Below the pieces are notes generated by a model. That model saw only the letters and a program-made list of their open reading frames with translations, had not been told where the DNA came from and did not search any database. Shown here piece by piece: positions 3,227 through 50,497 of a stretch of DNA of 64,000 nt. The stretch comes from Macrostomum hystrix. Taxonomy: Eukaryota; Animalia; Platyhelminthes. Position 1 is the stretch's first letter. Every line of letters begins with the position of its first letter. The stretch spans positions 1,736,001 through 1,800,000 of the forward strand of contig CATNEN010000005.1 of the NCBI GenBank assembly GCA_950097015.1. The letters are read 5' to 3'. The position numbers and the translations under genes are program-made.

Positions 3227-6200
3227 ATGGCCCTTCCTCGACACTATGTTGTCCACAGATTTGTTAAGATCACACTGAAGGACCTGAGCAAGGAGTCTAG
3301 CCAGTGTGATCCCGCCTTTGGCTATGTGCTCAATAATAATAGTAAAATGCTGCGAGACCAATTAGCCGGTCTACTGAATAAGCAGCAGTATTTGTATGTC
3401 AGGGACAAGGCTGGTTGGACACTGTTGCACTATGCTGTACTATGCGGTCATCAGGATATTGCTAGCTTATTGTGCCAGTGCGGCTTTGATCCAAATATCA
3501 AATGCGATGTTAGCGCCTTCGGCGTGACTGGCTGGCGGGCTGCCCACATCGCTGCCGAACGAGGAGACGCTGATATGCTCAAATTATTAATCTCTTTTGG
3601 TGCCAATTGTGAATTGACTGCGGAAATTTCTGGCGGAGTTGAAGAACAACAGCAACAGCAGCAGCAACAACAACAGGATCAACAAGGGGTGAGTGAAGGT
3701 CCCCGAGCTCGATTCCGCGGCGAGGTCACATTTGGGGCTTGTTATGTTATCTACGGCCTTATGGGGCAACCTCTATGAGAGTGTGACGATAAGAAAGTCA
3801 GGGCGGATGTACACACCTGTGTGAGGGTGTGCCTGCGTACAGTGTCTGTGTGCGTGTGTGCTCAGGAATTAGCGAAATGGTCAGAAGTGCTAACTGCAGG
3901 TCTAATGTCGCTAAACGATGTTTCTATCGCCCACAGCCATCCTGCAATTATTTTTTCCATTTTTTAATAGGATCAGCAGCAACAGACTGCAGCAGCATCC
4001 AATCCAGCCAATACAGATTTGTCCGGCCTATCGGAACGATGGAACGCTGTACACATGGCTGTAGTCAGCGAGTCTGTTGATTCAGTCCGAGCCTGTCTAG
4101 AGCTTGGCGGCGCCTATGTGGACACGCGCACACTCAGGCGACAGACGCCGTTAATGCTAGCCTGCCGTTCCGGCTGTCTGGCTATTGTGCAACTGTTGTT
4201 AACAGCCGGAGCCAGTTTGAAAGCTAGGGATAGTCAGGTTTGTTTTACTTATTCGCGTGTTTTAATTGATTATGTAATGTTGCTACGAATTTGTTTATCA
4301 GAGAACCAATGCAACCTATACCAGACAACTAATGACCCCCTTTACCAGACAACTAATGACCCCCTTTAGCAGACAACTAATGACCCCCTTTAGCAGACAA
4401 CTAATGACCCCTTTACCAGACAACTAATGACCCCCTTTACCAGACAACTAATGACCCCCTTTAGCAGACAACTAATGACCCCCTTTACCAGACAACTAAT
4501 GACCCCCTTTACCAGACAACTAATGACCCCATTTACCAGACAACTAATGACCCCTTTACCAGACAACTAATGACCCCTTTACCAGACAACTAATGACCCC
4601 ATTTACCAGACAACTAATGACCCCCTTTAGCAGACAACTAATGACCCCCTTTACCAGACAACTAATGACCCCTTTACCAGACAACTAATGACCCCATTTA
4701 CCAGACAACTAATGACCCCCTTTAGCAGACAACTAATGACCCCATTTACCAGACAACTAATGACCCCCTTCACTAGGCAACTAATTACCCCTTTTACTAG
4801 ACTACTATTGACCCCCTTTACCACACAACTAATGACCCCCTTACTAGGCAACTAATGACCCATTTTACTAGACTACTAATGACCCCCTTTACCAGACAAC
4901 TAATGACCCCTTTACCAGACAACTAATGACCCCCTTTACCAGACAACTAATGACCCCTTTACCAGACAACTAATGACCCCATTTACCAGACAACTAATGA
5001 CCCCTTTACCAGACAACTAATGACCCCCTTACTAGGCAACTAATGACCCCCTTTACTAGACTACGAGTACTAATGATCCCCTTTACTGGACAACTAATGA
5101 CCCCCTTTACTAGACTACGAGTACTAATGACCCTCTTTACCAGACAACTAATGACCCCTTTATCAGACAACTAATGACCCTCTTTACCAGACAACTAATG
5201 ACCCTCTTTACCAGACAACTAATGACCCCTTTATCAGACAACTAATGACCCTCTTTACCAGACAACTAATGACCCCTTTATCAGACAACTAATGACCCTC
5301 TTTACTAAACAACTAATGACCCCTTTATCAGACAACTAATGACCCTCTTTACCAGACAACTAATGACCCTCTTTACCAGACAACTAATGACCCCTTTAAC
5401 AGAAAACTAAGGACCCCTTCACTATACTATACTATAAATAGACGAATCGGATGGAGGCGTTCCCCCCATTGTTACGCTCTATTAGCTAATCGTCTGAATT
5501 GTCTCCGTGCAGGGTAACACGCCGCTTCACTACGCGGCCCAGTCGCCTTGTCTGGATACGCTGCGACACGTTCTAGAAGCCGGCGCTCAGGCTGACGCTT
5601 GGAATCTAGCTGGCCAGCTGCCTGTGCACAATGCTGCCAGCAGTCGGTGCTCCGGCGTAGAGAATGTCGAACTACTGCTAGACGCATATCCAGCTAGTCT
5701 AGAATCTGCTGCCTCAATGCCAGATTTAAACATTAGCGGCGGTGCCACTCCGCTAATAGCCGCGGTTGTATCGCCCGGAGCTTGCTCGGTCACTGAGAAG
5801 TTATTGGCCATGCTAAAACGTGGCGCCAATATTAATAGACTATTTGATTACGGCTCACTAACCGGCGTGAATGTCCTGCGCTTTCTAGTTGATACTCGCA
5901 GTATTAATACCGACCTAATTAGTTATCTGCTTAGCAACGGTATCGACGTTAATTCGGTTGCTAGCGATGGCGTCTCGCCGTTACTGTGCGCTGCCCAGAA
6001 AGGTTCGGTTGTCATGGTAACTAAACTGTGCAAATTCAAACCGGATCCGAATGTGGCCGATAGAGACGGTTACACGGCGCTAATGTACGCCGTCAAATGT
6101 CGCAATCCTAGCCTGGTCAGAACACTACTGGAGCTAAAGCCTAATTTGGAGATTGCAATCAATTTCTTTGACGCGAGGCGTAAGTTAGAGATGAGTGTGT

Positions 6201-9200
6201 TTACTATGGGTGTCAGCTGATGTGCTGAAGAATCGGAGGGTTTTTGGTGTGGGGGTGTCAGCTGATGTGTTGAAGAATCGGAGGGTTTTTGGTGTGGGGG
6301 TGTCAGCTGATGTGCTGAAGAATCTGAGGGTTTTTGGTGTGGGGGTGTCAGCTGATGTGTTGAAGAATCGGAGGGTTTTTGGTGTGGGGGTGTCAGCTGA
6401 TGTGCTGAAGAATCGGAGGGTTTTTGGTGTGGGGGTGTCAGCTGATGTGTTGAAGAATCTGAGGGTTTTTGGTGTGGGGGTGTCAGCTGATGTGCTGAAG
6501 AATCGGAGGGTTTTGGTGTGCGGGTGTCAGCTGATGTGCTGAAGAATCGGAGGATTTTTGGTGTGGGGGTGTCAGCTGATGTGCTGAAGAATCGGAGGAT
6601 TTTTGGTGTGCGGGTGTCAGCTGATGTGCTGAAGAATCGGAGGGTTTTTGGTGTGGGGGTGTCAGCTGATGTGCTGAAGAATCGGAGGGTTTTTGGTGTG
6701 CGGGTGTCAGCTGATGTGCTGAAGAATCGGAGGATTTTTGGTGTGGGGGTGTCAGCTGATGTGTTGAAGAATCTGATGGTTTTGTTGTGCGGGTGTCAGC
6801 TGATGTGCTGAAGAATCGGAGGGTTTTTTGGTGTGGGGTGTCAGCTGAGGTGCTGAAGAATCGGAGGGTTTTTGGTGTGGGGGTGTCAGCTGATGTGCTG
6901 AAGAATCTGAGGGTTTTTGGTGTGGGGGTGTCAGCTGATGTGCTGAAGAATCGGAGGGTTTTTGGTGTGGGGGTGTCAGCTGATGTGTTGAAGAATCGGA
7001 TGGTTTTGTTGTGCGGGTGTCAGCTGATGTGCTGAAGAATCTGAGGGTTTTGTTGTGGGGGTGTCAGCTGATGTGCTGAAGAATCGGAGGTTTTTTAATG
7101 TGGGGTGTCAGCTGATGTGCTGAAGAATCGGAGGGTTTTTAATGTGGGGTGTCAGCTGATGTGTTGAAGAATCTGAGGTTTTTGGTGTGCGGGTGTCAGC
7201 TGATGTGTTGAAGAATCGGATGGTTTTTGGTGTGGGGGTGTCAGCTGATGTGTTGAAGAATCGGAGGGTTTTTGGTGTGGGGGTGTCAGCTGATGTGTTG
7301 AAGAATCGGAGGGTTTTTGGTGTGGGGGTGTCAGCTGATGTGTTGAAGAATCGGAGGGTTTTTGGTGTGCGGGTGTCAGCTGATGTGTTGAAGAATCGGA
7401 GGGTTTTTGGTGTGGGGGTGTCAGCTGATGTGTTGAAGAATCGGATGGTTTTGTTGTGCGGGTGTCAGCTGATGTGCTGAAGAATCTGAGGTTTTTGTTG
7501 TGGGGGTGTCAGCTGATGTGCTGAAGAATCGGAGGGTTTTTGGTGTGGGGGTGTCAGCTGATGTGCTGAAGAATCGGAGGGTTTTTGGTGTGGGGGTGTC
7601 AGCTGATGTGTTGAAGAATCGGAGGGTTTTGTTGTGGGGGTGTCAGCTGATGTGCTGAAGAATCGGAGGGTTTTTAATGTGGGGTGTCAGCTGATGTGCT
7701 GAAGAATCTGAGGTTTTTGGTGTGGGGTGTCAGTTGATGTGCTGAAGAATCTGAGGGTTTTTGGTGTGGGGTGTCAGCTGATGTGCTGAAGAATCGGAGG
7801 GTTTTTTGGTGTGGGGGTGTCAGTTGATGTGCTGAAGAATCTGAGGGTTTTTGGTGTGGGGTGTCAGCTGAGGTGCTGAAGAATCGAAGGGGTTTTTTGT
7901 GGGTGTGATTTCTGAGGTGCTGAATGCCTTGAAATACGACGGATAGAAAGGTGTGATTAATCAATAAAGCTTAGCATTGGTATTCCATTCCTTTTCAGGC
8001 AACAAGTACGCCAACTGCACTCCGCTACAAATGGCCATCGGCAAGGGTCAAGTGGAGATTGTCAAGATGCTGATGGATGCCGGAGCTAATTTGTTTGCTA
8101 ACATGGACAGCATGGGTGAGTGGCTTTCGACCTGTGTTTTTATCACGGTTACAATATGGAAGTAACGCGTTACTAAACAGTTTAAAAACGGTTACACCCT
8201 GGAGTTGACGATTCTGAATTCAGCTCACTTTGTGAGTAACAATTCTTAGACAGAGTTACACTCAGAAAGTAACGATTTAAAACACAGTTACTCTCTGAAA
8301 GTAACGAATAAAAACAGCTACACTTTGAAATTAACGATTAAAAACAGCTTAACGTTTTAAGTCAAACTACAATTCCACAGCTGCAGACTTTAACTAACGA
8401 TTTAAAACACTGTTACACTCTGAAAGTAACGACTCTGAAAAATGTCGTACATTGGTTATCGCTGGATAAACTTGCAGGACCAGACCAGACAGAGTTTAGC
8501 GTCTCCTGTCTGCACACAGCTGTGGTGATGGATCATGCCGGCATAGGCCAACTGTTACTAGATCGCGGCATTGATGTCAATGTTTGCACCTCGTCAGGTT
8601 TGACACCTTTGCACTACGCCGCCAGCTGGGGTCACGACGTATTTGCTAGACTCTTAATTAGCCGCGGAGCCACTGTTGACGCTGTCGGCGAACAATTTAT
8701 GGCCACGCCTTTGATCTATGCCGCCAGGCGAGATAAGCACACAACTATGAAACTGCTGTTGGAACACGGCGCTAATCCTAATCATCAGGATAAGCAGGTG
8801 AGACGAAATTTTATTAGTTATTTTTATTATTTTTCTGACAGAAACAAGTTTGAGTCTTATTGATTATTATTATTAAAAAAATAAAAAACGTTTTCTAATA
8901 ATGACTTTTATTGCTAAACTTAATTAATAACCAAATTACTGTCACTAAAATTGAACACGTACATCACTACTAGCTGCTAAACTACTACTCACTCGTTTAT
9001 TACTACTAGCTCATGTGTACGACTAGATTATCTGATACTACTAGCTCGCCTATACTACTAGCTCGCCTATACTACTAGCTCGCCTATACTACTAGCTCGC
9101 CTATACTACTAGCTCGCTTATACTACTAGCTCGCATATACTACTAGCTCGCATATACTACTAGCTCACATATACTACTAGCTCTTTGACTTACTTGACTT

Positions 9201-12200
9201 AGCGGCAGGGAGCCTCCATGACGGACGCAGCGAGGAGGCGGCTGATGCCGCCCATATCGCTAACCCCTGGCATACTACTAGCTCACATATACTACTAGCT
9301 AGCATATACTACTAGCTCGCATATACTACTAGCTCGCATATACTACTAGCTCGCATATACTACTAGCTCGCATATACTACTAGCTCGCATATACTACTAG
9401 CTCGCATATACTACTAGCTCGCATATACTACTAGCTCGCATATACTACTAGCTCGCATATACTACTATCTCGCCTATACTACTTGCATGTGTATACTACT
9501 AGCTCGCCTATACTACTTGCATGTGTATACTACTAGCTCGCATAAATAACTTAGTCTAACAATAATATTTTAGGCAGACAAAATTTCTTTTTTATTTGTT
9601 ATGCATATGCATGTCAATTAATGAACAAAAAATGCTCATTGCTCAGGGCTACACCGCGTTACACTGGTGTCTTACCTTCAATCACGTGGACTCGTTGGAG
9701 ACTCTACTAAATTGTGGCCGCAGGCTAGACGTGAATCTAGTAAGCCAGAAGGTGGATCACAGACGCGGTGTGACGGCCCTAGTGCTTGGCCTTGAGTACT
9801 GCTCAGCTAAAGTGGTTGAACGCCTCCTAGACTTGGGCTCGGATCCCAATGTTGTCTTTGACGCCAACGAGATGACCCTGACGCCAATCTTTCTATGCGC
9901 AGAATTTGGCTGCGTTGATAAGCTTCAGCTGCTGATTAAATTTGGCGCCGACTTAAATAGGTTTGTGTGCACCTTTTCTGACTTTATAAAAGCTTTTAAA
10001 TAATATAAAATATTTTAATTGTTGATGAAATCAAATACAATTATCAATGAAGACTTATGAATATGTACTCCAGTGCCTAAATGAGTGAAACTATGCACTA
10101 GAGTGACCAAATAAGTGAAACTATGCACTAGAGTGACTACAAGAGTGAAACTATGCACTAGAGTGACCAAATGAGTGAAACTATGCACTAGAGTGACCAA
10201 ATGAGTGAAACTATGCACTAGAGTGACCAAATGAGTGAAACTATGCACTAGAGTGACCAAATGAGTGAAACTATGCACTAGAGTGACTACAAGAGTGAAA
10301 CTATGCACTAGAGTGACCAAATGAGTGAAACTATGCACTAGAGTGACCAAATGAGTGAAACTATGCACTAGAGTGACCAAATGAGTGAAACTATGCACTA
10401 GAGTGACCAAATGAGTGAAACTATGCACTAGAGTGACCAAATGAGTGAAACTATGCACTAGAGTGACCAAATGAGTGAAACTATGCACTAGAGTGACCAA
10501 ATGAGTGAAACTATGCACTAGAGTGACTACAAGAGTGAAACTATGCACTAGAGTGACCAAATGAGTGAGACTATGCACTAGAGTGACTACAAGAGTGAAA
10601 CTATGCACTAGAGTGACCAAATGAGTGAGACTATGCACTAGAGTGACCAAATGAGTGAAACTATGCACTAGAATGACCAAATGAGTGAAACTATGCACTA
10701 GAGTGACTACAAGAGTGAAACTATGCACTAGAGTGACCAAATGAGTGAAACTATGCACTAGAGTGACCAAATGAGTGAAACTATGCACTAGAGTGACCAA
10801 ATGAGTGAAACTATGCACTAGAGTGACCAAATGAGTGAAACTATGCACTAGAGTGACCAAATGAGTGAAACTATGCACTAGAGTGACCAAATGAGTGAAA
10901 CTATGCACTAGAGTGACTACAAGAGTGAAACTATGCACTAGAGTGACCAAATGAGTGAAACTATGCACTAGAGTGACTACAAGAGTGAAACTATGCACTA
11001 GAGTGACCAAATGAGTGAGACTATGCACTAGAGTGACTACAAGAGTGAAACTATGCACTAGAGTGACCAAATGAGTGAGACTATGCACTAGAGTGACCAA
11101 ATGAGTGAAACTATGCACTAGAATGACCAAATGAGTGAAACTATGCACTAGAGTGACTACAAGAGTGAAACTATGCACTAGAGTGACCAAATGAGTGAAA
11201 CTATGCACTAGAGTGACTACAAGAGTGAAACTATGCACTAGAGTGACCAAATGAGTGAAACTATGCACTAGAGTGACCAAATGAGTGAAACTATGCACTA
11301 GAATGACCAAATGAGTGAGATTATGTACTAGAGTGACCAAATGAGTGAGATTATGTACTAGAGTGACCAAATGAGTGAGATTATGTACTAGAGTGACCAA
11401 ATGAGTGAGATTATGTATTAGAGTGACTAAAAGAGTGAAAATATGCACTAGAGTGATACAGGAGTGACACTATTCTATTGTGGGAGTAAATGAGGGAATT
11501 ATTTCACTGTACAGAATAGATCTAGCACCATCTAATCCCTCCAACATTCCCAGAACCTCCTCTCGCAAGGAGACTCCGTTGCATTTCGCGTTGCGCTTCA
11601 AGAAGGTGGCGGCGGCGGAACGCCTGATCCGGGCCGGAGCGGACCTGGAGACCAGAGCCAGCATTGGCAATGGCGAGCATCAGCAAGGCGTCCACGTTGC
11701 CGCCCAGCTCGGGCTGAATAGTTGCATTCGCCTCCTGGCCGAGTACGGAGCCAATGTCAACTCGACCATGACTCTAAAGTGTGTAGAACGAGTCACACCG
11801 TTGCATTTGGCGGCGCTGAACGATCTAGCTGAGACTGTGAAGATTCTTGTCAGCTTGGGCGCCGACGTGAATTGTCAGAGGAGCGACACTTTCACGCCTC
11901 TATTGACAGCCGTCACTAAGTCTAATGTGTGCGCGGTCAAGTGTCTGGTTAGGGCTGGAGCCGATATTCACACCAGATGCATTGTGTCCAGAAGCAAGGA
12001 TGCCACCTGTTTGCATATTGCAGCTCAGGTCAGTTTGCATGAGGATTCTAGGATTTTGGATTTCTGTTTCGTGGATTGGGATTCCATTTTGAAGGGCCGG
12101 GATTCCTGTTCAAGAAATTAGGATTTTTAGATATATTGATTTCGTCTTCAGAAATTGGAATTGCTTTATTTGGGATTAGGATTCGACTTCAGGGATTGGG

Positions 12201-15200
12201 ATTCAATTAAAGGGACTGGGATTCAATTAAAGGGATTGGGATTCAATTAAAGGGATTGGGATTCAATTAAAGGGACTGGGATTCAATTAAAGGGATTCTG
12301 ATTCAATTAAAGGGATTGGGATTCAATTAAAGGGATTGGGATTCAATTAAAGGGATTGGGATTCAATTAAAGGGATTGGGATTCAATTAAAGGGATTGGG
12401 ATTCAATTAAAGGGATTGGGATTCAATTAAAGGGATTCTGATTCAATTAAAGGGATTGGGATTCAATTAAAGGGATTGGGATTCAATTAAAGGGATTGGG
12501 ATTCAATTAAAGGGATTGGGATTCAATTAAAGGGATTGGGATTCAATTAAAGGGATTGGGATTCAATTAAAGGGATTGGGATTCAATTAAAGGGATTGGG
12601 ATTCAATTAAAGGGATTGGGATTCAATTAAAGGGATTGGGATTCAATTAAAGGGATTGGGATTCAATGGAAGGGATTGGGATTCAATCGAACGGATTGGG
12701 ATTCAATTGGGATTGGGATTAGGATTGGAATTTCTTTAATGGGATTGGCATTCTATTAAAATGATTGGTATTTAATATTAGAGTGATTGGGATTACTTTA
12801 GATAAATTTGGATTCAGTTTAAGGGATTAGGATTCGAGTTTCAGGATTTAGATTTGATTTTAGGGATTAGGATTATATTGAAAATCACAATTTTATGTAA
12901 GGATTTGTACTTCATTTTCGGTTTTCTACTTAACTTACTTTAATGCTATACTTTTTCATGACAGTCACAAACTATTTGACAATTTCGAATACCAGTTTGA
13001 GCACAGTATTTGAGCGCACGCCAATCGCATTACGCAGGTTGGCAGCCTAGAAATTGTCGACCTGCTGCTAGAGCGGGGCGCCAATCCTTTGGCTCGCATG
13101 GTCACCGGGGATCGAGCCGGCATCCTTCCAGTCCACCTGGCCTCCGAAACTGGCCACCTGGACGTCATCAAACGCTTCCTGGACATTGGCGTTGATGTCA
13201 ACGCTCAGGAGGACTGCGGCCTGACCTGCCTGCACTACGCGGCCAACGGTGGCAAGGCGGACATCATCAGGCTGCTGTTGGAGCGCGGCGCCAGGGTTGA
13301 TCTGAAAGCTGCCTACGATGACGGTGAGGCCTCGATGGTGGGACAGAGGTAGAATGATGAAGATTGTGAGAACTAGAGAAGGTAGATTTTGAGAATTAGA
13401 GTATGAAGATTATGATAAATAGATAATTTGAAGTAGATTGAGTAGAGTGAGAGAAGCAGATTGGGCAGATTGGGAGAAGTAGATTGGGTAGATTGGGAGA
13501 GGTAGATTGGGTAGATTGGGAGAGGTAGATTGGGCAGATTGAGAGAAGTAGATTGGTTAGATTGTAAGATTGTAAGTTAAGCGGTAGATAAAAAAATTAT
13601 CAAGGGATTAGGAGGCCGAGTTGTTAATGTATTAAGAAGCCGAGCTGTTAAGGGATTATGAAGCTGAGCTGTTAAGGGATTAAGAGGACGATTTATTAAG
13701 GGGTTAAAAGGTCGAGTTAAGGAAATAAGAGGCCGAGATGTTATTGGAATATGAGGACGAATTGTTAAGGGATTAAGAGGCTCAGTTTTTATTTGATTAA
13801 GCGGTCGATTTGTTAAGGGATTATGTGGCCGAGTTGTTAAGAGATTAAGAGGCCGAGTTGTTAAAAAGGATTAAGAGGCCGAGTTGTTAAGGGATTAAGA
13901 GGCCGAGTTGTTAAGGGATTAAGAGGCCGAGTTGTTAAAAAGGATTAAGAGGCCGATTTGTTAAAAGGGATTAAGAGGCCGAGTTGTTAAAAAAGGATTA
14001 AGAGGCCGAGTTGTTAAAAAGGATTAAGAGGCCGGGTTGTTAAAAAGGATTAAGAGGCCGAGTTGTTAAGGGATTAAGAGGCCAAGTTATTAAGGGATTA
14101 AGAGGCCGAGTTGTTAAGGGATTAAGAGGCCGAGTTGTTAAGGGATTAAGAGGCCGAGTTATGAGGGGATTTAGGCATCAAGCAACTAAATGAATAATTT
14201 CGCCTACGACGACGACAGGCAATCGAGTCGACGTGCTGCCCCTGCACATGGCCTGCGAGAAGGGTCACGCCGAATGCGCCCGCCTCCTAGTTGAAGCCGG
14301 CAGTCCGCTGGACGCCACCCTGTTTCGCAATCGCCGGGGCAGCATCACGCCTCTGTACTTGGCCGTAGCCGAGAACAATCCCGAGGTGGTGTCGGTCTTG
14401 TTGGCGGCCGGAGCCGACGTCAACATTCAGGACGGCATCGGCGCCGCGCCGTTGCATATCGCCTGTCAGAGAGGCTATCATGACATCTTCTGCCAGCTGC
14501 TGAGTCATCCGGGAGTCGATATCAACATCGGCACATTCAACTGCGTTACGCCCATTCACATTGTGTCCGAGAAGGGCCATTTCGATATGGCCATGTGGCT
14601 CATTGCGCGCGGTGTTCACGTTAATCCTCTGTGCCGAATCAAAGACGTTCACTCCGGCCAAATGTCCGAGGACATTATTCCCCTGAATCAGGCTTGCGGC
14701 TTTGGACACCTGCAGATTGTCCGGCTGCTGCTTCAGGTGAGTGACAGGCTCTTGTATCGAGAGTGACAGGCTCTTGTTTCCAGAGTGATGGGCTCTGTTT
14801 GGAAGAGTCAAGGCTCTGTTTTTAAGAGTGACAGGCTCTGTTTGAAGAAGTCATAGGCTCTGTTTTTAAGAGAGACAAGCTCTGTTCAAGGAGACAGGCT
14901 CTTATGGGAGAGTGACAGGCTGCGATTAGAGTGACAGGCTGTGATTGGAGTGACAGGCTGTGATTAGAGTGACAGGCTGTGATTAGCGTGGCACACTGTG
15001 ATTCGAGTGACAGACTGTGATTGGAGTGACAGGCTGTGATTAGAGTGACAGGCTGTGATTAGCGTGGTACACTGTGATTCGAGTGACAGGCTGTGATTGA
15101 GTGACAGGCTTTGATTGAGTGACAGGCTGTGATTAGAGTGACAGGCTGTGATTAGAGTGACACACTGTGATTCGAGTGACAGGCTGTGATTGAGTGACAG

Positions 15201-24112: not shown

Positions 24113-24118
24113 TATAAA
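24113..24118 (+). promoter_or_regulatory. Candidate TATA box of the neuropeptide-precursor gene
   Basis: TATAAA upstream of a putative 5'UTR exon that ends at a gg|gtaagt donor (~24300); acceptor cacacccag| at 24462 precedes the ATG at 24488. Confidence 0.35.
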
Positions 24119-24487
24119 CTGGTCTAAGCATCTTGTTTGGAGCACAGCCCTCTTTTGCCCAAAAGTTTTTTGTTCCCAAAAAAGCCACTCCGTTTGGCAA
24201 TAGAATTTGTTCTATACCAGCCGTGTGTGTCTAAACACAAGCCTCTTTAAACCCAAGTTTGCTTTTTCAACTACTGTAGCTTCTCTCTCTTTCCGTCGGG
24301 TAAGTCTTGATTGAGTTTTTGAAACAATTATTCTAAAGTTTAATTAGACTGATTGCACTGACGATTGGATTGATTGATGACTGAATTTCAATTCTTGGAT
24401 TTCATTTGCTTTATTGATTGGGTATTTCTTCTTATTCAAAGTCGGATTTTGATCACACCCAGGTCGGTTGCCTAAAACTTCAACGGA

Positions 24488-25500
24488 ATGGCCAAAAGCA
24501 GCAAACTGATCATTTCCTTCCTGCTAGTCATCCTGGCAGCTTCCGTTCTGGCCGAGGTGAGAACTTGAATGGTCACGCGTGTAGTTCTTTCTTCCGAAAA
24601 AAGACATTTTCTTAATCCAAAGCCACTCCTGCTTTATTTTCTGATTCACACAGAGAGCAGACTTGTCGGAATTCGAGGAACGAATGCTGGAGCGAGAGCA
24701 CGCTAAGCCGCAGTCGCAGCGGCATCACAAAGGCGGCCACCGGCAGTCGACGCCTGGGCATCGCGGCGGCGGTCACCATAAGAAGCCAGAATTTGAACGA
24801 CGCGCCGCCCTGTCGGACTTTAAACGCGCCGCTCTGGCCGACTTCAAGCGTGCCGCCCTGTCGGACTTCAAACGCGCCGCCCTGTCGGACTTCAAACGCG
24901 CCGCCCTTTCGGACTTCAAACGCGCCGCCCTGTCCGATTTCAAACGCGCCGCTCTGGCAGACTTCAAACGCGCCGCCCTAGCTGACTTTAAACGTGCCGC
25001 CCTAGCTGACTTTAAACGTGCCGCCCTAGCTGACTTCAAACGCGCCGCCCTTTCTGACTTCAAACGTGCCGCACTGTCTGACTTCAAACGCGCCGCTCTT
25101 AGTGACTTCAAACGTGCCGCCCTGTCCGACTTTAAGCGCTCTTCAAGCCAGCGTGGTCATCACCGCGAAAGCGAGATGTCTGATTTGAAACCGCAAGCTC
25201 AGGTGAGGTCAAGGTGACAATTCTAGCTTACCCGTAATTTATTAGAATGTTAATTAGGTTAATTGTTCTGTCAAATGCTTATCGCTTGAAAGGTGTGAAA
25301 TACTTTCGAACTCTTTTATGAAGTCACTCTTAGTCTCTTATCAGTGGGCGGAATCTAGTCATGTGACGTCACCCTAACCATTCTCACTGTTTCAGCGACA
25401 GCATCAGAATGAAGAGAAACGGGCCTACTACTGGGACGTGTGCAGCCGATGGGTGAAGGGACAGGAACGCCTTTACGTCTGCAAGAAACAGGTGCGCTGA
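24488..25500 (+). CDS. Neuropeptide/peptide-hormone precursor (~240 aa): signal peptide, 14 x AAL(S/A)DF-KR, C-terminal two-Cys peptide
   Basis: Exons 24488-24556 (MAKSSKLIISFLLVILAASVLAE), 24654-25202 and 25396-25500, all phase 0 with GT-AG ends. Dibasic KR/RR sites flank every hexapeptide. Repeat units vary mainly at synonymous sites. A possible AATAAA lies at 25630-25635. Confidence 0.88.
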
Positions 25501-26956
25501 GCACCCATTAATCGACAGAATTGAGAAATGAAAAGAGGCGGAATTATGAGCTAAATTTTGAATTCTGAGTACATTAATTTAAACTCACTTAATTGTCTAT
25601 TTAAGCCTGTTAATGCACTAACAAATGAAAATAAAAGTGAAATATAAATTTACTTTATTTCTTACTCGACCATTTTCTAAGTAAGATTCGTTGAGGCTAT
25701 AGTTGTAACTTTAATCAGAAAATCTGACAAATATTTATAATATACCTGTGTCCTGTACGTACCTAAGCAGCTAAAATACTTTGTAATTAAATATGATTTA
25801 ATAACATTGCCATTGATCGTCATCCATTGTTACAACAATAATTAATATCTTCGGTACACAAAGTAATACCAATTCAGTTCTTGTTACTATAACGAACTCA
25901 ACTATTACTGACTTACCTATATTTTTCTGTTTAAACTAAACAGAATGATCACTTTACTATCATATCATTGCTTAGCCACCGACGACTTTTGTCATAAATT
26001 CATAAATATTTTATAATCTCAGTAATTAATGTTACAATTGGATGTGAATATATATTTTAATTTGTCATTTCCTAATTATGAACAACTGCTATTCACTACT
26101 AATTGTACAATGTTTAAAGTCTATAGACAACATTAATGATACTTATAGAAATGCAATGCCATTTCCGACATTTAATTAAGTGGTAAATTTTGAAAGAAAC
26201 ACATTTTTCCCTATAGTTATTCTAACTATTTCTGCTGCGAAAACGCTTATTTCTTTTTGCTAAATCCGACAAATAAAATTTGCCGAAAAAAATATTTTTT
26301 TTGCTGCCGACATAAAATCAACTTTCTTTACTGGTTCATGAAAACGATTGCCAATGCATTAGCGGAAATAAGTTTTTACGTGTATAGAAACTTCCTGTGA
26401 GCTACTCTACAATGAAAGCGAAAACATGACTCGATTACTTAGTCACCGCAGAAGAAGGATTATTAATAAATTTCTGAGCGAAAAGATGAACAAACCGCAT
26501 CATTTGAAGTTTGTGAATCGAAGTGTCCTTCTATTTTTCTTCCGTTTTGTTGGTATCTGCTCGATTTAGTTGTACCATCAATGAGCATCTATAAATCACC
26601 TGCAAAGGTTTTATGGGGCTGTTAGGAAATTACAACATGAAGGATCAGAATGGTTAAAACTATATACAATTCTGTAGTTTCAACCGTTCTAGCTTGTTCA
26701 AAACAGGTTTGATATGTACCACGATTCTTTACCCAAACTTAATTATGTAAGTTCATAGATTTTCGTCAACTGACTTGTAAATTTTACTAACTTTAATTTA
26801 ATAAAAATTTGAAAATTTGCCCCTGAAGATGTCCATTGTGGGACGAAATGTCACATAACTCTTTTCAACAGCTAGCAAGAGAAACAACAACAAATTTATT
26901 TTATAGCGGCTTTAGCTCGTATTTATAAATGACACAGTTAAATAATTTTCACTAAC

Positions 26957-32221: not shown

Positions 32222-33993
32222 TCAGCGCTTATCCCCGCGCACTTTATCCCTGACTGAAGCGGCTTCACCGCTAGAAGCAGCGGCAGAAGACGCGCCAGCA
32301 GCAACATCGCTCGCACCCATAGCTTCTAATTCGTCATAAAAGAAGCTTCTCAAACGGAGCAAATATTGGGGAAATAATTCGATATCATTGTGACCGGCGC
32401 CTTCGACCCACAGCGGGTCAACTGGCCTTGGCAGGCGTTCGTAAATGGCAAGGCCGTGGGCCACGCTAATCACTTCATCCTCAGTGCCGTGAATTACTAG
32501 ACAAGGCGAACGAATCCTTGGCGCCTTGTCAATGCTGCGGAAAGGGAGCAGCGATTCGGTTTGTGAGCGCTTGAAGCAGTAGGGTCAGAAATTATTGGCG
32601 GCCCATTAGGTTAAAGTGGATAAATATTGGTCAAAGTCTACCCCACTATCTAAATACCCCAAAAATACTCCATTATTCACTACAAAAGCCTACTCCATTA
32701 TTCACTACCAGAGCCAATTCCACTATCTACTACCAGAGCCTACTCCACTATCTACTACCAGAGCCTACTCCACTATCTACTACCAGAGCCTACTCCACTA
32801 TCTACTACCAGAGCCTACTCCACTATCTACTACCAGAGCCTACTCCACTATCTACTACCGGAGCCTACTCCACTATCTACTACCAGAGCCTACTCCACTA
32901 TCTACTACCAGAGCCCACTCCACTATCTACTACATGTGCCAACTCCACTATCTACTACAAAAACCTACCCTATTATCTGCTACCAAAGTTTACCCCATTA
33001 TCAACTATCAAAGCCTACCCCATTATCTACTATCAAAGCCTACCCCATTATCTACTATCAAAGCCTACCCCATTATCTAATATCAAAGTCTACTCCATTA
33101 TCTACTACTAAAGTCTACCCCATTATCTACTCTTATCTACAGGCCTATCAAAGCCTGTATAGCTAAGGTTCGCATACTTCAGATCCAAATCCTACATTCT
33201 TCAAGCATCATCATCATAATTATCAGCAGCAGCGGACTCACTTGGGAAAGGCATCAAAGAACCAGGTTCTGCTGGTGTCCGGGAAAGCGACCCGCAGGCC
33301 GGACAGCAATGGGCTGTGCAGTATAACACCAGCCGGGTTGACCCGAGTGGCCAAATCCATAGTTGGCACAGTGCCAATAGATTGGCCATAGAGTACAATC
33401 TCGCTAGGCGCCAATCCGTATCGGCCAATCAACTGCTGCCAGGCGCAGTCAATATCGGCGTAAAGATTCTTCTCTAGCGGCCTGCCAGTGCTGGCACCAT
33501 AGCCTGAGTAGTCATAGCTGAATATGTTCATATTGAGCTTGCGTCCCAGGTCGATAAGGAAGCCGCTCATCTGACCTAAATCGACAGCGTTGCCGTGCGA
33601 GAATAGCAGGGTGTACTTTGAGCCGCGCCGAGATCGAACGGCGCGAACTAGGACGCATGCGATCACGCTGCCCCGCGACGTCGTAGCGGTTGACGCCTCC
33701 AGGCATTCGGCTTCGTCGTCAGTCAGCTGCATAACCGGAGCAGTCACCGGATCGTCGCCGCTAGCAGACGGATTCAATTGGAATCTGAGATTGCTCATTT
33801 CTCCAACTAGTGAGTAGGTCGGCCTCGGCGGTAGGAAGGCTAATTTTGCGGCGATTCGCGACGGAAACGGCGGCCAACAGAATAGTCGGCAGAGGTCGCG
33901 GCAGGTCATGGAGGTGGCGCCACTGGCGTGTCCGCCGTCTTCGTGATGAATGTAAGGCGCGCCGGCAGGATTGGACTGATGATTGCCGTCCAT
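32222..33993 (-). CDS. abhd17: ABHD17-family alpha/beta hydrolase (protein depalmitoylase), paralog A
   Basis: Exons 33993 (or 33909)-33242 and 32534-32222, phase-2 GT-AG intron. Cys motif [38 protein letters not shown], nucleophile GQSIG, HGTEDEV and GAGHNDIEL match the ABHD17 signature. Confidence 0.93.
32630..33150. repeat. 25-bp minisatellite (ccagagcctactccactatctacta) in the paralog A intron
   Basis: Tandem array read directly. Confidence 0.88.
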
Positions 33994-34339
33994 TTGGGGT
34001 CCGAATCGGGTCACAGGTTAGATCGAGATATGGTTGCAGTGCTGGTTAATGCGAGATCAGAGACAAAACAAGCTGGATGAGGATAAGAGAATTTGCATAG
34101 CCGTATGGACTGCGACCTGTTTAGCAATGCGAAGCTGTTTGATTTAGTATCTGCAGATTTTTTGAGTGACAGCAGCTGGGCTGAAATTAAAATTTCAAAG
34201 CATTTTTAAGATCAACTCAGTTTAGTACCTAAACAAGCGCGCAATTCCACTGATTACCCACCGGCTATCATGAGACACGCAAAGCCGACTTAATAACTCA
34301 CCACAGAGCCTAATAATCACCCACCTTGAAATCTTACAC

Positions 34340-35778: not shown

Positions 35779-35930
35779 TATCCAAAACGGCAAAATTATG
35801 ACTTTCAGAACATTTTGAATCGTGAAAATGTCGACTTAAAGTAAAATTAATCCTTTAGTCTCAGCATTGCGTTTTAGTAACTTCATTGGTTCGGCTGCGG
35901 TTCTGATCACTGCTGCTGCTCCTGCTGTTT

Positions 35931-38270
35931 CTACTGCTGCTGCTCCTGCTGCTGCTGCTGCTCCTGCTCCTGCTGTTTCTGCTGCTGCTCCTGCTGCAGC
36001 TGCTGTTTCGGCTCCTGCTCCTGCTGTTTCTGCTGCTCCTGCTGCTGCTGCTGCTCCTGCTCCTGCTGTTTCTGCTGCTGCTGCTCCTGCTGTTTCTGCT
36101 GCTGCAGCTGCTGTTTCTGCTCCTGCTGTTTCTGCTGCTGCTGCTCCTGCTGCAGCTGCTGCTGTTTCTGCTCCTGCTCCTGCTGTTTCTGCTGCTGCTG
36201 CTCCTGCTGTTTCTGCTGCTGCTGCTCCTGCTGTTTCTGCTGCTGCTGCTCCTGCTGCAGCTGCTGTTTCTGCTCCTGCTCCTGCTGCAGCTGCTGCTGT
36301 TTCTGCTCTTGCTCCTGCTGTTTCTGCTCCTGCTGCAGCTGCTGTTTCTGCTCCTGCTCCTGCTGTTTCTGCTGCTGCTCCTGCTGTTTCTGCTCCTGCT
36401 GCAGCTGCTGCTGTTTCTGCTCCTGCTCCTGCTGTTTCTGCTGCTGCTGCTCCTGCTGTTTCTGCTGCTGCTGCTCCTGCTGTTTCTGCTGCTGCTGCTC
36501 CTGCTGCAGCTGCTGTTTCTGCTCCTGCTCCTGCTGCAGCTGCTGCTGTTTCTGCTCTTGCTCCTGCTGTTTCTGCTCCTGCTGCAGCTTCTGTTTCTGC
36601 TCCTGCTCCTGCTGTTTCTGCTGCTGCTGCTGCTCCTGCTGTTTCTGCTGCTCCTGCTGTTTCTGCTGCTGCTGCTCCTGCTGTTTCTGCTGCTCCTGCT
36701 GTTTCTGCTGCTGCTGCTCCTTCTCCTGCTGCTGTTTCTGCTGCAGCTGCAGCTGCAGCTCCTGCTGCTCCTGCTGCTCCTGCTGCATCTGTTCTATCTC
36801 CTTATAGAGAAACGAGCGCAATCTCTCCAGATACTGAGGATAGAGTTCGATGTCGTTGTGTCCAGCGCCTTCAATCCACAGGGGTTCAACAGCCGGTCGG
36901 GGCAGGCGATCGTGGATGACGAGGCCGTGGACGAAGTTAATCACCTCGTCCTCGGTGCCGTGAATCACCAGGCAGGGGGCGCGAACACCGGGCGCCTTTT
37001 CTATGCTGCGGAATTAGGCATAGGCAGACTTAGGTAGGAATAGGGAAGCAGTTCCTCTACTCCCATTTTTTCTTCACTCCAGTTCCTCTACTCCCATTTT
37101 CTCCTCACTTCAGTTCGTCTACTCCCCTTTAAAAAGAGAAAACATGACCGCTATTTGCAATCAGATAGAAAACCCATACACCACAAAGTATTCTACCACC
37201 AACCCTAAAACTTACCGATCAACTCCCCGAATCTTATCCATCACCCACCCTAAAGCCATTGTTTCTTACTGGCCATTACTACCCCAAAGATTTCTCAAAA
37301 GGCAATCGAATATCAACCGAAAGTCAATCCATTAACTCTCTAAAGCTATACAATATCACACCAAAGCCATTACGTTATCATGATTCACAACAAAGCTATT
37401 CCGATATCCCACCAAAGCCGTACCATTACTGTCATAAATATCTCAAACTCTACTCAATTAATTAGGATCCTAAACCTACATCTTGTTATCAACCATTTAA
37501 CGGAGTTACACGTAGTAACCGAATTTGGTGCAAATCAAGCAGCAGCATCAGCATCATCATCATCATAATTATCAGCAGCAGCGGACTCACTTGGGAAAGG
37601 CATCAAAGAACCAGGTTCTGCTGACGTCCGGGAAAGCGATCCGCAAGCCAGACAGCAATGGGCTGTGCAGTATAACACCAGCCGGGTTGACCCGAGTGGC
37701 CAAATCCATAGTTGGCACAGTGCCAAGAGATTGGCCATAGAGTACAATCTCGCTAGGCGCCAATCCGTATCGGCCAATCAGCTGCTGCCAGGCGCAGTCA
37801 ATATCGGCGTAAAGATTCTTCTCTAGCGGCCTGCCAGTGCTGGCACCATAGCCTGAGTAGTCATAGCTGAATATGTTCATTTTGATGCGCTTACTAAGAC
37901 CAATTAGAAGGCTGCTTATTTGGCCTAAATCAACGGCGTTGCCGTGTGAGAACAGCAGGGTGTACTTTGATTTAGTGGTGGTACTGCTGTGGTATGGTTT
38001 AACCATCATGCAGGCTATAGTATTACCCTGCGATGTTTTGGCTAGAAATGCTTCCAACAATCTAGCCATATCTTCGTTAGTGAATTTAAATTTAGCCCGA
38101 TCACTCAAGTGCAAGTGGAATGCCTTCTCATCTTTACCATGACTGTCGCTAAGCGACGCCGAAGCTGTCAGAGAGTAAGTTGGCTCAGGCGGTAGAAAGG
38201 CCAGCTTGGCAGCTATGCGCGATGGCAATGGAGGCCAGCACAATAGGCAGCAGATGTCTACACAGGACAT
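35931..38270 (-). CDS. abhd17: ABHD17-family hydrolase, paralog B, with a ~284-aa Gln/Glu/Lys tail (~584 aa)
   Basis: Exons 38270-37591 and 37005-35931, same intron position and phase as paralog A. Motifs [50 protein letters not shown] are followed in frame by a CAG-rich tract. Confidence 0.9.
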
Positions 38271-43312: not shown

Positions 43313-43356
43313 CAAGGACCACTAGAAGAAGAGTGGTCCTCTTCTAGTGGTCCTTG
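43313..43356. mobile_element. 44-bp mini-MITE (two 17-bp TIRs plus a 10-nt core)
   Basis: caaggaccactagaaga-agagtggtcc-tcttctagtggtccttg, flanked by gaatattc at 43305-43312 and 43357-43364. Confidence 0.6.
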
Positions 43357-43364
43357 GAATATTC

Positions 43365-43833
43365 TGTAATGAAATAATTCGTCTATTTTAAATTGTTAGT
43401 AAAATCAAAATATTTATTGTATACTGTTATTACAACTAAATTTATGCTAATCATCTTCTCATATAGCCGGTATTTTCGTACGGATGTTTGTATTAATTAT
43501 GTATTTAGTATTTGTTAAATCTACGCTTGACAAGTTAAATATAAAGTGACACCAGTTGCAACCGGTTTTCTGACCCGCGCGCGCGCATCGGGATTAGCTA
43601 CTAAGTTTAGATAAGTAGAATATTCGAACATTAGATTATAATTAATATAACCACCTTTAACTAATCTTGCTCTATATTGTAAGCGCGTGCGTCAGCAAAG
43701 CGGCGTAATTTATATAACAGAAGTAGGCCCTATCACTAATTATATTACTAATTATATTACATTAAGCTGCAGCCCTTCAAAACGATTTACAATTCATTTT
43801 AAATGGCGACCACCGACCAATAAATTCATTACA
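43365..43833 (+). repeat. 5' LTR
   Basis: Direct repeat of 50509-50977 with TG...CA ends. Confidence 0.96.
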
Positions 43834-43835
43834 AA

Positions 43836-43853
43836 TGGCGACCACGCCAGGAC
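43836..43853 (+). promoter_or_regulatory. Primer-binding site, probably for tRNA-Arg(TCG)
   Basis: TGGCGACCACGCCAGGAC, 2 nt after the LTR; its complement ends in GGTCGCCA like metazoan tRNA-Arg(TCG) 3' ends (the primer class used by mdg1/412-type elements). Confidence 0.75.
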
Positions 43854-44236
43854 CATACTCTAAATGTTAGACTCTGCTGGAATCTATTAGCTATTTTAAT
43901 ATAATCTGGATTCATATTCATTTACTTTGTGTAGTTTTGAGTAATCTCTTCTCTGATATCGAAATTTGTTAATATCTACATACACTTTATCTGTATTTTC
44001 TGGTTATATATTGTCTCACTAAATCTCAGTTAGTCTAGAGCTAGTCTCTTGATTGTTGCCCCTTGCATGTTGCAACTACAGTTTAACTAGGCCTAGATCT
44101 CATTAATGACTTATTTCTCCTTTGGTATTGACCTAATAATTTATTTTGTTTCAAACTACATTTCAAACTCAAACTAGTAATATTGGTCTTAATAGGCTAA
44201 GTTAAATAAAGATCTTAGCTCAACATTTCATTTGTG

Positions 44237-45556
44237 ATGTCTCAACACTTAATGGACACAATTGAATTAAGAAATCGATCAGTTCAGAGAGCACCTGTGC
44301 CAATTCAATCCAACCCTTGGCCAGGCCAATCTGGTGACTTCCAGTCAAACCCAAATGCAGACTATTCATTCTTTAACCCACCAGAACAAATCAATAGAAC
44401 TGAACCAACAATACAAACAAATCCTTTCTATATTGATTATGGTCATAGAGAACCATACATTCCATTATCATCTGCACAAGAAAATTTGAGAGTTCAAGAG
44501 TGGATAAACCACAATCCATCAAGAAGCACTAATCCATTTTTAGATGAAGCATCATGTATTGCCGATTCAGAGCCAACCAATGCTACCAATCCTAGCCTTT
44601 TCTTAGGCCCAGTGCCTCAAGTTTTTCAAGCACAAAAGCATACTAGCATTGAGCCTATGCCAACATCTTACCAGATTCCTCCTGTGCCTAAGCCAGCACC
44701 ATTTAATGGCAAGGAAGACTTTTCTGATTTCATTGCTAGAATCGATAATTATCTTTGCAGATTCCCTAGCTTGACTGATGCTATCAAAATTCAAACACTT
44801 GTTGCTTTCTTAGGTCCAGTCTTTAGTTCTTATAGAGCCTGGTTGGCAAATGCATGTGCATCAGCAAGTATGCCTCTAGGTACACCTCTTGAACAACTGC
44901 CAAATGCTACCTATGACTTATGTGTGCAATTTTTAAAGAGTAGACAAGGTGAGAAAACTAGTATTGTTCTTAGAAGAGAAGTTCGGACCCTAACTAGGAA
45001 GCCTAATGAAACATTTGAGCAATTCTTGACAAACTTACAAAATCTAGCCATTCAAGCTTATCCAGAAAACGCCAATAGTGAAGTAGTCCAAACTATGGTG
45101 CTTGACCAATTTATTGCAGGTATTGGTGACTTAAAGGTAACAGAGTATTTGTCTAACCAATTGCACCTTGAGACACCAGAACAAGCTCTACAGCTGGCAC
45201 AACAAGTTCGAGAGACACAGTTGCTACTTCAAAGTCAATCTACACATAGTGCACAAAGAAGCAATATAATAAGAAACACTAAGCCAATTTACCCACATAT
45301 GGGAAGTCAGCAATGCAATTCAATAGACTCTCAATCTAACCACATGCAAGCAACTGCTAAAACAGCTGTAAACGCAAGGCCTTATCAACCAGCACTACTG
45401 AACCAGCCACAGCGCCAACTGCACCAGAGCAGGAACCAAGGGAAATGCTATGGATGTGGTCAACATGGGCATATAAATAGGAATTGCCCAAACGCCAATC
45501 AGGCTGGATCACGGGGCAGATTCCAGCCAAGAGTGCCAACTGCCCCACCACTGTAG
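44237..45556 (+). CDS. gag: Gypsy Gag polyprotein
   Basis: ATG at 44237; capsid-like FNGKEDFSDFIARIDNYL; CCHC knuckle CYGCGQHGHINRNC. Confidence 0.92.
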   Translation: MSQHLMDTIELRNRSVQRAPVPIQSNPWPGQSGDFQSNPNADYSFFNPPEQINRTEPTIQTNPFYIDYGHREPYIPLSSAQENLRVQEWINHNPSRSTNPFLDEASCIADSEPTNATNPSLFLGPVPQVFQAQKHTSIEPMPTSYQIPPVPKPAPFNGKEDFSDFIARIDNYLCRFPSLTDAIKIQTLVAFLGPVFSSYRAWLANACASASMPLGTPLEQLPNATYDLCVQFLKSRQGEKTSIVLRREVRTLTRKPNETFEQFLTNLQNLAIQAYPENANSEVVQTMVLDQFIAGIGDLKVTEYLSNQLHLETPEQALQLAQQVRETQLLLQSQSTHSAQRSNIIRNTKPIYPHMGSQQCNSIDSQSNHMQATAKTAVNARPYQPALLNQPQRQLHQSRNQGKCYGCGQHGHINRNCPNANQAGSRGRFQPRVPTAPPL

Positions 45557-49281: not shown

Positions 49282-50497
49282 GTCGATCACTGCCGAAATC
49301 CTTGAAGTTTCTCTTTCCGATCCAGTATTCCAAATGACACAATAATGACACTTATTACATTAAGGGAAGATATGCTTTACTATTATTCTAGAATTTTAGG
49401 TTATTTTAGGTTTGAATAAAAAAAAATTATGTCGCTATGGCCGAAATTAATGCAGATTTTGTTTCAGATGCCCGACTGTGTTGCTATAAGCTACAAGTAA
49501 ACTTTCGGTTGATTGCACTTTTTAATTTTCCATGCGTATGCGTTAACATTTAAACAATATGTCGTCAATCGAATGCTTTTCGCTGCAATAAAGTTCTTTC
49601 GTTTGCTTGTATCTCGAAGTTATTTATCTTCTGTTTGCACTTCCAATATCCTTAAGTGTATCGGTTGCTTTGCAATAAAATTTACCGGCATTCGTGATCA
49701 ATGCATTTTAAAGTCCCAATATGATTAATTGTTACTCGTTACTCGTCAAAATCGTGTTTTTCAAATGTTTAGTTTTTGTATATGTTTTCTTGCGTTTACA
49801 CAATTTTGCGCATTTCAATGAGTTATTGTTTGTGAATGGACTTAACCACTGACTATTCCCTCGTTATTGTTGATGTCGAATGAATCCAAATAGCTAGTCG
49901 AAGTTTGATCGTGTTTAAGTTTTGTCGTGATGTTCGTTATCCATTAAATGTCTATTTGTACCGTAAGAAACCTGTAGACTGTATTGACTGTATTTTTAGA
50001 CTTTGCAATTTTGTATTTTATACTGTATCCGTGTTGTCATAGTTACTGTTATGTTTAGTAGTTTGTCGTGGTTTTCTTCTAGCCGCTGCCACAGCCAGGC
50101 ATGCAGGAGGCATTGAAATGTCCTCCTTGTCATCGCCCGGCAGGTTGGTTCGGTAGAGTTTTGTGAGGCTCGCTGAGGCTTAGGGATTCGAAGCTACCCC
50201 GTCTTTTCGGTGCGTGGTGCAGCTTTCGATCGCCCAAGTTCTTGTCGGTTCTTGTTTGTCAGTTTCGCAGTCCCCGCTCCCAAGCGTACATTTTGTGCTG
50301 TTCGTCTTGTGTTGCTCGGTATCTGTTGAACGGTGTTGTCGCTTGATATCTATTGCTTCGTGTAGAATATATATTATCGAACCTTGTATTTGTACTGCTA
50401 GTAGTATAATCGCGATATGAAGCTATGTATTGAAGTCATTGTAATGCCATATGTACGTTATTTATTGTTATTTTCAATGAGGACATTGACTTTTGTT

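Follow-up and report, generated by a model that had tools for sequence, protein, structure and literature searches.

A Macrostomum gene for a predicted secreted multi-copy hexapeptide precursor with a conserved two-cysteine tail

Introduction

What does a tandem array of 24-nucleotide (nt) units in the genome of the flatworm Macrostomum hystrix encode, and what could its product be for? The array lies in a 64,000-nt stretch of DNA (positions 1,736,001 to 1,800,000, forward strand, of contig CATNEN010000005.1 in assembly GCA_950097015.1; hereafter the window, to which all coordinates refer unless a contig is named), and an earlier note on this DNA had read it as the central part of a precursor that carries 14 hexapeptides and a C-terminal peptide with two cysteines. 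We find that the locus at 24488-25500 is a real protein-coding gene of Macrostomum whose predicted product is a small secreted pre-pro-protein built like a multi-copy peptide precursor. Below, we describe the gene, the selection on its array, its paralogue and its orthologues, and then weigh what the peptides may do.

Results

A three-exon gene encodes the precursor

Read from the sequence, the gene extends from an ATG at 24488 to a stop codon ending at 25500 and consists of three exons, with GT-AG introns and all junctions in phase 0. The encoded protein has about 240 residues. The features are as follows.

24488-24556, plus strand: exon 1, start codon and 23-residue leader ending VLA-E; donor GTGAGA at 24557
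24557-24653, plus strand: intron 1, 97 nt, GT..AG, phase 0; acceptor cacAG
24654-25202, plus strand: exon 2, 183 residues; acceptor cacAG upstream, donor GTGAGG at 25203
24654-24683, plus strand: degenerate N-terminal copy RADLSEFEER, the first 10 codons of exon 2
24684-24803, plus strand: His/Gly-rich basic spacer with RR at its end (24798-24803)
24804-25139, plus strand: hexapeptide array, 14 tandem 24-nt units of AAL(S/A)DF plus KR
25140-25202, plus strand: post-array spacer, 21 residues, closing exon 2
25203-25395, plus strand: intron 2, 193 nt, GT..AG, phase 0; acceptor tttcAG
25396-25497, plus strand: exon 3, followed by TGA at 25498-25500
25396-25422, plus strand: head of exon 3, spacer RQHQNEE and then a predicted KR cleavage site at 25417-25422
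25423-25482, plus strand: C-terminal peptide of 20 residues, with Cys7 and Cys20 encoded at 25441-25443 and 25480-25482
25483-25500, plus strand: KKQVR tail and TGA stop, by translation
25630-25635, plus strand: AATAAA, a polyadenylation-type signal by sequence match only, 130 nt past the stop

A mechanical list of open reading frames (ORFs) shows the exon-2 ORF alone (24663-25217), and the unspliced frame of exon 2 would terminate at 25217. The earlier note had stated that this list misses both the signal-peptide exon and the last exon, which is indeed the case. It had also proposed a spliced product with the order signal peptide, RADLSEFEER, His/Gly spacer, RR, array, spacer, and KR-tail-KKQVR, and every one of these parts was confirmed in the sequence. 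Its three-exon model agrees with the phase-0 GT-AG junctions, with the exon layout of a paralogue, and with proteins of Macrostomum lignano that span both junctions (see below). Exon 3 is translated as ..KR-AYYWDVCSRWVKGQERLYVC-KKQVR, with 12 residues between Cys7 and Cys20. The leader has a best 12-residue Kyte-Doolittle mean of 3.21 and small residues at -3 and -1, a hydropathy heuristic by which it is a predicted signal peptide, and equivalent hydrophobic leaders ending in AE are present in the paralogue and in the M. lignano proteins.

Upstream of the coding region, a TATAAA sequence is located at 24113-24118, about 375 nt 5' of the ATG, and a GTAAGT..CAG pair within 24301-24463 could be an intron in the 5' untranslated region, giving a four-exon gene.

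Purifying selection acts on the hexapeptide

Tandem Repeats Finder reports the array with a period of 24 and 14.2 copies. Its units encode AALSDF-KR nine times and AALADF-KR five times, Gly precedes none of the KR sites (0/14), and the S/A exchange is the sole residue change in the array. At the nucleotide level, nine columns of the units are variable, seven at third codon positions and two in the S/A codon, which includes a switch from TCN to AGT serine codons. Counted by codon phase, 1/8, 1/8, and 7/8 columns are variable, and the respective shares of the diversity are 0.15, 0.04, and 0.81. As controls, unit diversity by phase was measured identically for eight neighboring minisatellites. 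In these, each phase contains 2-7 variable columns, and the richest phase mostly holds 37-52% of the diversity; one control reaches 68% in its richest phase, with the phase being arbitrary. Independently of this, leader and splice sites set the reading frame of the array. Because the diversity of the units is concentrated at third codon positions and only S/A changes a residue, it is the peptide and not the DNA repeat that is selected: the array is coding, and purifying selection acts on the hexapeptide.

A degenerate DNA pattern for A-A-L-[S/A]-D-F-K-R was searched in 220 Mb and gave 14 matches here, nine in one paralogue, and two isolated ones outside these genes, and a reversed control pattern gave 0 matches in the same 220 Mb. 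The two singletons (C38:2539373-2539395 and C39:12149946-12149968) encode "AALTDFK." and "AAFADFK." and are probably due to chance. With these analyses, the unit count of the earlier note (9 x AALSDF and 5 x AALADF, each with KR and without Gly) is confirmed, its expectation that the hexapeptides would be non-amidated is supported by the lack of Gly before any KR, and its observation that the unit differences are mostly synonymous, unlike those of the neighboring minisatellites, is borne out by the 81% of diversity in phase 3 versus mostly 37-52% in the controls.

A paralogue and orthologues share the same modules

The minus strand of contig 12 (C12) encodes a paralogue that shares the three modules and the intron positions. 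Its leader of 21 residues ends in SAE and is followed, directly after the signal peptide, by a GTGAGC donor and a 120-nt intron. Exon 2 contains an initial R, an isolated intact copy KR-AALADF-RKR in the N-terminal spacer, a basic spacer, and nine AALADF-KR units; AALADF is thus present in 1+9 copies, and all nucleotide differences among the nine tandem units are synonymous. The second intron (75 nt) is found at the equivalent spacer position, and exon 3 reads ..KR-QLYWDICTRMQNGQEMYYACQKSL, with a tail that begins with QLYWDIC..C and ends in ..CQKSL, without KK. The alignment of the two exon-3 sequences has 14 invariant columns, including Y-W-D, both Cys residues (12 residues between them), and G-Q-E, and the 25-residue tail (the 20-mer plus KKQVR) is 46% identical to that of the paralogue. 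The isolated N-terminal copy has stayed intact in the paralogue lineage and decayed in the gene described here, where RADLSEFEER has lost its dibasic borders.

The protein search of the same genome with exon 2 gave 166 matches. Those other than the paralogue were considered as kin and rejected, as the ones inspected are translated minisatellites that are open in several frames.

A word-index search with exon 2 returned three M. lignano proteins, P0001-P0003, which are filed as hypothetical or as "Conserved secreted protein". In a single chain, they comprise a leader, a His-rich spacer, RR, 8-11 AAL(S/A)DF-KR units, a spacer, and KR-SYYWDVCSHWING(R/Q)ERLYVCKKQIR, the tail having the form KR-SYYWDVC..C-KKQIR. 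Both splice junctions are supported because these proteins read straight across them. The M. lignano orthologue of the paralogue is contained in P0004, a 900-residue mis-model with 1+9 copies and a tail that begins with QLYWDICTRMENGEE; like the paralogue, P0004 keeps the dibasic-flanked isolated copy in the N-terminal spacer. As both paralogous genes have M. lignano orthologues, the gene pair is, judged by sequence, older than the split between M. hystrix and M. lignano.

Conservation between the two species differs from module to module. The hexapeptides are identical apart from S/A and one A-to-S exchange at position 2 in M. lignano, and the C-terminal 25-residue tail is 76% identical, while the leader reaches 45% and the spacers 36-38%. 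The N-terminal part at 24654-24803, degenerate copy included, consists of 14% His and 38% basic residues and is 36% identical to M. lignano, and the post-array spacer is 38% identical; the His-richness of the spacers is retained in both genes and both species. Since hexapeptides and tail are conserved while the spacers drift, selection is on the products rather than the scaffold, and such module-wise conservation is a classic prohormone signature.

The C-terminal tail is predicted to form a beta-hairpin

AlphaFold2, run on exon 3 with the paralogue as alignment, predicted a beta-hairpin with a mean predicted local distance difference test (pLDDT) score of 84.5 and core values of 96-97. Residues 11-20 and 23-32 form the strands, which are connected by a turn at K-G. 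All three relatives have N-G instead of K-G at the turn, and N-G is a classic type I' turn pair. The model and the conservation are in agreement with the earlier note, which had found the two-Cys tail consistent with a cyclic beta-hairpin around a K-G turn, and a ring-closing intramolecular disulfide between Cys7 and Cys20 is plausible in this model. The KR before the tail is conserved in all four genes, and the KK after the second Cys is retained in the M. lignano orthologue. The net charge of the tail is +1 to +4 here (+4 as the 25-mer) and 0 in the paralogue.

An antimicrobial function of the hairpin was considered and rejected on the basis of the uncharged paralogue tail, the acidic hexapeptides, and the lack of a BRICHOS domain in the Pfam search.

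Searches for wider relatives

A profile was built from P0001-P0003 and the exon pieces of both genes and run on 1.84 billion representative proteins. Among the nine sequences inspected of the best 150, there was no relative outside Macrostomum; besides Macrostomum proteins, among them P0004 and the models P0009, P0013, and P0026 described below, the inspected matches were periodic repeats. Pfam assigned no family to the exon pieces or to P0001-P0002, and P0003 had one sub-threshold GRP match. The sequence search of the PDB had a best E-value of 0.37 and thus no meaningful match, and Foldseek with the hairpin model found nothing at E < 3. In the ESM Atlas, the best look-alike was an apidaecin multi-peptide precursor with a score of 0.77, which is below the score reached by shuffled proteins, and all structure matches had template modeling (TM) scores < 0.4 and are meaningless. 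A literature search with the M. lignano gene identifiers gave no paper, and DFKR, LADF, LSDF, ALSD, WDVC, WDIC, LYVC, YYAC, and GQE are absent from all eight supplementary files of the planarian prohormone study of Collins et al. (2010; PMC2953531). Within these searches, the precursor appears to be restricted to Macrostomum.

The earlier note could not assign either peptide to a named family and regarded the system as possibly undescribed. The first statement holds, with Pfam, PDB, the profile search, and the planarian prohormone tables all lacking a match. The second holds for the searchable literature, although the orthologues were already public as hypothetical proteins and lineage-specific multi-copy precursors are routine.

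Discussion

Proposed processing and function of the precursor

We infer cleavage, disulfide formation, secretion route, cell type, and receptor action of the peptides, and our proposal is as follows. The 23-residue leader would direct the protein into the endoplasmic reticulum and be removed after ..VLA. In the secretory pathway, a convertase of the PC2/PC1-3 type would cut after each RR or KR, and a carboxypeptidase would remove the basic residues. Nine AALSDF and five AALADF hexapeptides would be released, with free carboxyl ends because there is no Gly as amide donor at the KR sites. Further products would be His-rich spacer fragments and one C-terminal peptide of 20-25 residues that would fold as a beta-hairpin, probably with a Cys7-Cys20 disulfide. 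The hexapeptides would most likely be the main signaling product, a neuropeptide or peptide hormone acting on a receptor, and the conserved tail would be either a second ligand or a precursor-associated module. The computed [M+H]+ values of the predicted hexapeptides are 623.30 for AALSDF and 607.31 for AALADF, and those of the tail peptide would be 2522.17 for the oxidized 20-mer and 3161.59 for the 25-mer.

The choice of convertase follows from the cleavage sites. The furin consensus needs an Arg at P4, and sites without it point to the regulated pathway with PC1/3- or PC2-type enzymes. The dibasic sites of the precursor, F-K-R, E-R-R, and E-K-R, have no P4 Arg, and cleavage of the PC1/3 or PC2 type is proposed for this reason. 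Convertase genes are present in the genome, as the P-domain PF01483 matches above the cut-off at 13 places, and a PC2 homologue of M. lignano is reported to have an in situ pattern in the nervous system and to be lethal upon knock-down in hatchlings (PMC4490696).

We thus favor a Macrostomum-specific secreted precursor that would be processed at dibasic sites into many peptide copies, and we consider this explanation likely as a whole. Its parts differ in strength: secretion and processing at dibasic sites are highly probable, and a neuronal or endocrine signal is somewhat better than an even bet.

Several aspects weigh against this explanation. His-rich basic spacers are unusual for neuropeptide precursors, whose spacers are more often acidic, and a six-residue acidic peptide with a free carboxyl end has no known receptor class here. 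In the hairpin model, the two Cys residues are on the same face but diagonal and not directly opposite, with a two-residue turn implied by DSSP. In addition, cleavage at the KK site behind the second Cys is uncertain because the paralogue has not kept this site.

Is the tail a second ligand?

An independent role of the tail as a ligand is a serious possibility, which we rate somewhat below even. It is tentatively conceivable, as a further reading of substantial weight, that the hexapeptides are the sole ligands and that the Cys hairpin is a precursor-associated module for sorting or aggregation in dense-core granules or for folding, analogous to the disulfide loops of granins and POMC or to the two-Cys C-terminal regions of luqin and SIFamide precursors. 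Such a module would fit the observation that the precursors of both paralogues have a single tail, placed at the very end. The His-rich spacers could promote a pH- or metal-dependent condensation, and the unconserved KK site and the diagonal Cys register point in the same direction. However, the KR ahead of the tail, conserved in all four genes, is expected of a released product, the paralogue tail begins with Gln, a typical pyroglutamate N-terminus, and the cross-species identity of 76% is as high as that of bona fide ligands.

Some known disulfide-loop systems resemble the tail in its position. In somatostatin/allatostatin-C, MCH, and urotensin II, as well as in the luqin and SIFamide precursors with their two-Cys C-terminal regions, a single Cys-Cys peptide is the last one of the precursor and directly follows a dibasic site, as it does here. 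Unlike these, the Macrostomum tail has 12 residues between the Cys residues instead of about 4-10, there is no motif similarity, and it is preceded by a 14-copy array. The annelid antimicrobial peptides arenicin and capitellacin, which are cut from precursor C-termini, are likewise spiralian beta-hairpins of roughly 20 residues with one disulfide (a putative one in our case) at the C-terminus of a precursor, but the Macrostomum proteins have no BRICHOS domain according to Pfam, and the paralogue tail has a net charge of 0.

Neuropeptide or exocrine product?

The same processed precursor could also be made in exocrine gland cells (prostate or seminal fluid, adhesive, pharyngeal, or epidermal) and not be a neuropeptide, in which case the peptides would work externally, be it as a pheromone, as a seminal peptide that manipulates the mate, or as a defense peptide. 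The limitation of the family to Macrostomum in the 1.84-billion-protein search is common for reproductive and exocrine products, the tail hairpin of the gene described here is cationic, with a net charge of +4 for the 25-mer, and the apidaecin precursor as nearest ESM look-alike (0.77) is a lead only. An antimicrobial role is nevertheless unlikely with a paralogue tail of net charge 0 and acidic hexapeptides, and the dibasic sites, being of the non-furin type, suggest the regulated PC2-type pathway. Moreover, reproductive proteins tend to evolve rapidly, but both genes and their peptides predate the split of the two species and have remained conserved. We therefore regard an exocrine origin as unlikely, and a neuronal or endocrine precursor remains our preferred reading.

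Apidaecin precursors and fungal Kex2-processed repeat proteins also release tandem units at dibasic sites, but this is an analogy of layout only, as both the taxa and the peptides are unrelated.

Structural protein, achatin-like relative, or minisatellite?

An uncut secreted polymer, such as a His-rich repeat protein of glue, eggshell, or stylet matrix in which KR merely provides charge, would be in line with the structural His/Gly-rich secreted proteins of other spiralians. We consider this very improbable, since the protein is short (about 240 residues), KR is strict at every unit border with invariant unit residues, RR and KR enclose the array and KR and RKR the isolated copy of the paralogue, and a separate KR-flanked tail suits processing better than a matrix role.

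A further candidate arises from the mollusk Aplysia, where the product SYADSKDEESNAALSDFA of the achatin-like precursor apALNP ends in AALSDF plus Ala and where this AALSDF-containing peptide carries a D-amino acid (PMC11277431). In a full-text literature search, the string AALSDF occurred in two papers only, of which this is one. The Macrostomum precursor might accordingly belong to the spiralian achatin-like family and have diverged strongly: the hexamer is exactly the same, and both precursors contain several KR-flanked copies of peptides that are very short, acidic, and non-amidated. However, the achatin tetrapeptide pattern G-[FYM]-[GAF]-[DN] is absent from all exon translations and from P0001-P0004, so that no G-F/Y-x-D unit occurs anywhere in the Macrostomum exons. 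In addition, the Aplysia hexamer is the end of an 18-mer and not a KR-to-KR unit, the Macrostomum unit is a hexapeptide and is accompanied by a Cys-hairpin tail, and a hexamer made of frequent residues may turn up twice by chance. Membership in the achatin-like family is therefore highly improbable, and the match to the Aplysia product, which was compared by the shared hexamer, is probably a coincidence.

Finally, a non-coding 24-nt minisatellite with exons as a chance construct, which could be suspected because the window holds many minisatellites (periods 15-45 nt) that are open in several frames, because such arrays are the best own-genome protein matches besides the paralogue, and because the AALSDF array is also open in other frames, is effectively refuted and has next to no probability, given the concentration of variation in phase 3, the TCN/AGT serine switch among units, the conserved order of signal peptide, array, and tail in paralogue and orthologues, and the presence of the array at only two loci in 220 Mb.

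Relation to multi-copy precursors of other spiralians

For the preferred reading as a processed precursor of signaling peptides, the closest concept is that of the lineage-specific multi-copy peptide precursors, many of which have been described as clade-specific in spiralians and xenacoelomorphs (Thiel et al., 2018; PMC6188537). Common features are the signal peptide, near-identical short peptides between dibasic sites, drifting spacers, and the occurrence in a single clade, and, as in those precursors, there is no detectable sequence link to bilaterian families. AAL(S/A)DF was not found among the multi-copy peptides in the searchable literature. Unlike the known precursors, those of Macrostomum have no amidation, an extra conserved two-Cys hairpin, and His-rich instead of acidic spacers. 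Among flatworms, the 51-gene prohormone study in planarians included the non-amidated prohormones eye53, 1020HH, planarin, and spp-12/16, which were validated by mass spectrometry (Collins et al., 2010; PMC2953531). These also yield free-acid peptides after cleavage at KR/KK, in a PC2-dependent manner (PMC2953531), but no sequence relation to the Macrostomum precursor was detected.

Neighboring genes and public gene models

A long gene encoding ankyrin repeats is located 5' of the precursor gene on the plus strand (2777-23023). Its exon-sized ORFs are found at about 3227-3778, 4019-4369, 5507-6220, 8522-8863, 9596-10003, 11480-12121, and 14233-14766, and nearly each gap is filled by a different minisatellite with a period of 16-45 nt and 20-80 copies. 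In the M. lignano model P0013, an ankyrin-repeat gene and the precursor are joined in one protein; the ankyrin part of this fusion matches the upstream ankyrin gene of the window, so synteny is conserved. In all, four public M. lignano models are wrong: P0004 is fused to 600+ residues of an unrelated frame, P0013 to the ankyrin gene, and P0009 and P0026 carry frameshifts across the array. Automated annotation evidently fails at the repeat arrays of these precursor genes.

Downstream, the window contains a Ty3/gypsy-type long terminal repeat (LTR) retrotransposon (43356-50799) with two 300-nt direct repeats that are 99% identical and 7144 nt apart. Its gag-like frame (44234-45556) and its protease-reverse transcriptase-RNaseH-integrase frame (45484-49281) are both open, and the intact frames together with the nearly identical repeats suggest a young insertion. 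On the minus strand, tandem paralogous exons of ABHD17-like alpha/beta-hydrolases (Hydrolase_4 match) are located at 33241-34014 and 37587-38270. Between them, a 24-nt CTG/CAG-type repeat (35910-36968) holds a minus-strand ORF of roughly 345 residues that is rich in Gln, Glu, and Lys and runs on into hydrolase-like sequence; it may be a coding repeat expansion. A further minus-strand region (57819-62208) encodes a DEAD/DEAH helicase with Helicase_C and Tudor domains, an architecture resembling that of TDRD9, which is a helicase of the piRNA pathway.

Significance for Macrostomum

No general concept is altered by the finding, as multi-copy precursors confined to one lineage are to be expected throughout the spiralian clades. 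It would carry greater weight only if the hairpin turned out to act as a novel type of second ligand or if kinship with achatin were confirmed. We regard it as rather unlikely, albeit worth stating, that one Macrostomum-specific precursor delivers two unrelated ligands, each with its own receptor, or that AALSDF is a remnant of kinship with the molluscan achatin-like family. If the former were true, a linear acidic free-acid hexapeptide in 10-14 copies would be combined with a disulfide-closed beta-hairpin with a 12-residue ring, and to our knowledge such a hairpin is not represented among the known bilaterian peptide hormones. If the latter were true, flatworm precursors would be linked to a molluscan family whose peptides bear D-amino acids.

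On the practical side, the analysis provides a worked control for recognizing peptide-coding arrays in a genome in which 24-nt minisatellites abound, and it brought several mis-fused or frameshifted M. lignano gene models to light. No catalogue of non-amidated Macrostomum peptides was found in the literature searched. Macrostomum is a genetic flatworm model used for transgenesis, RNA interference, and work on regeneration and mating behavior, and the gene pair offers it a clean candidate signal that predicts two hexapeptides of known mass and one oxidized hairpin, with the two paralogues as built-in natural variants.

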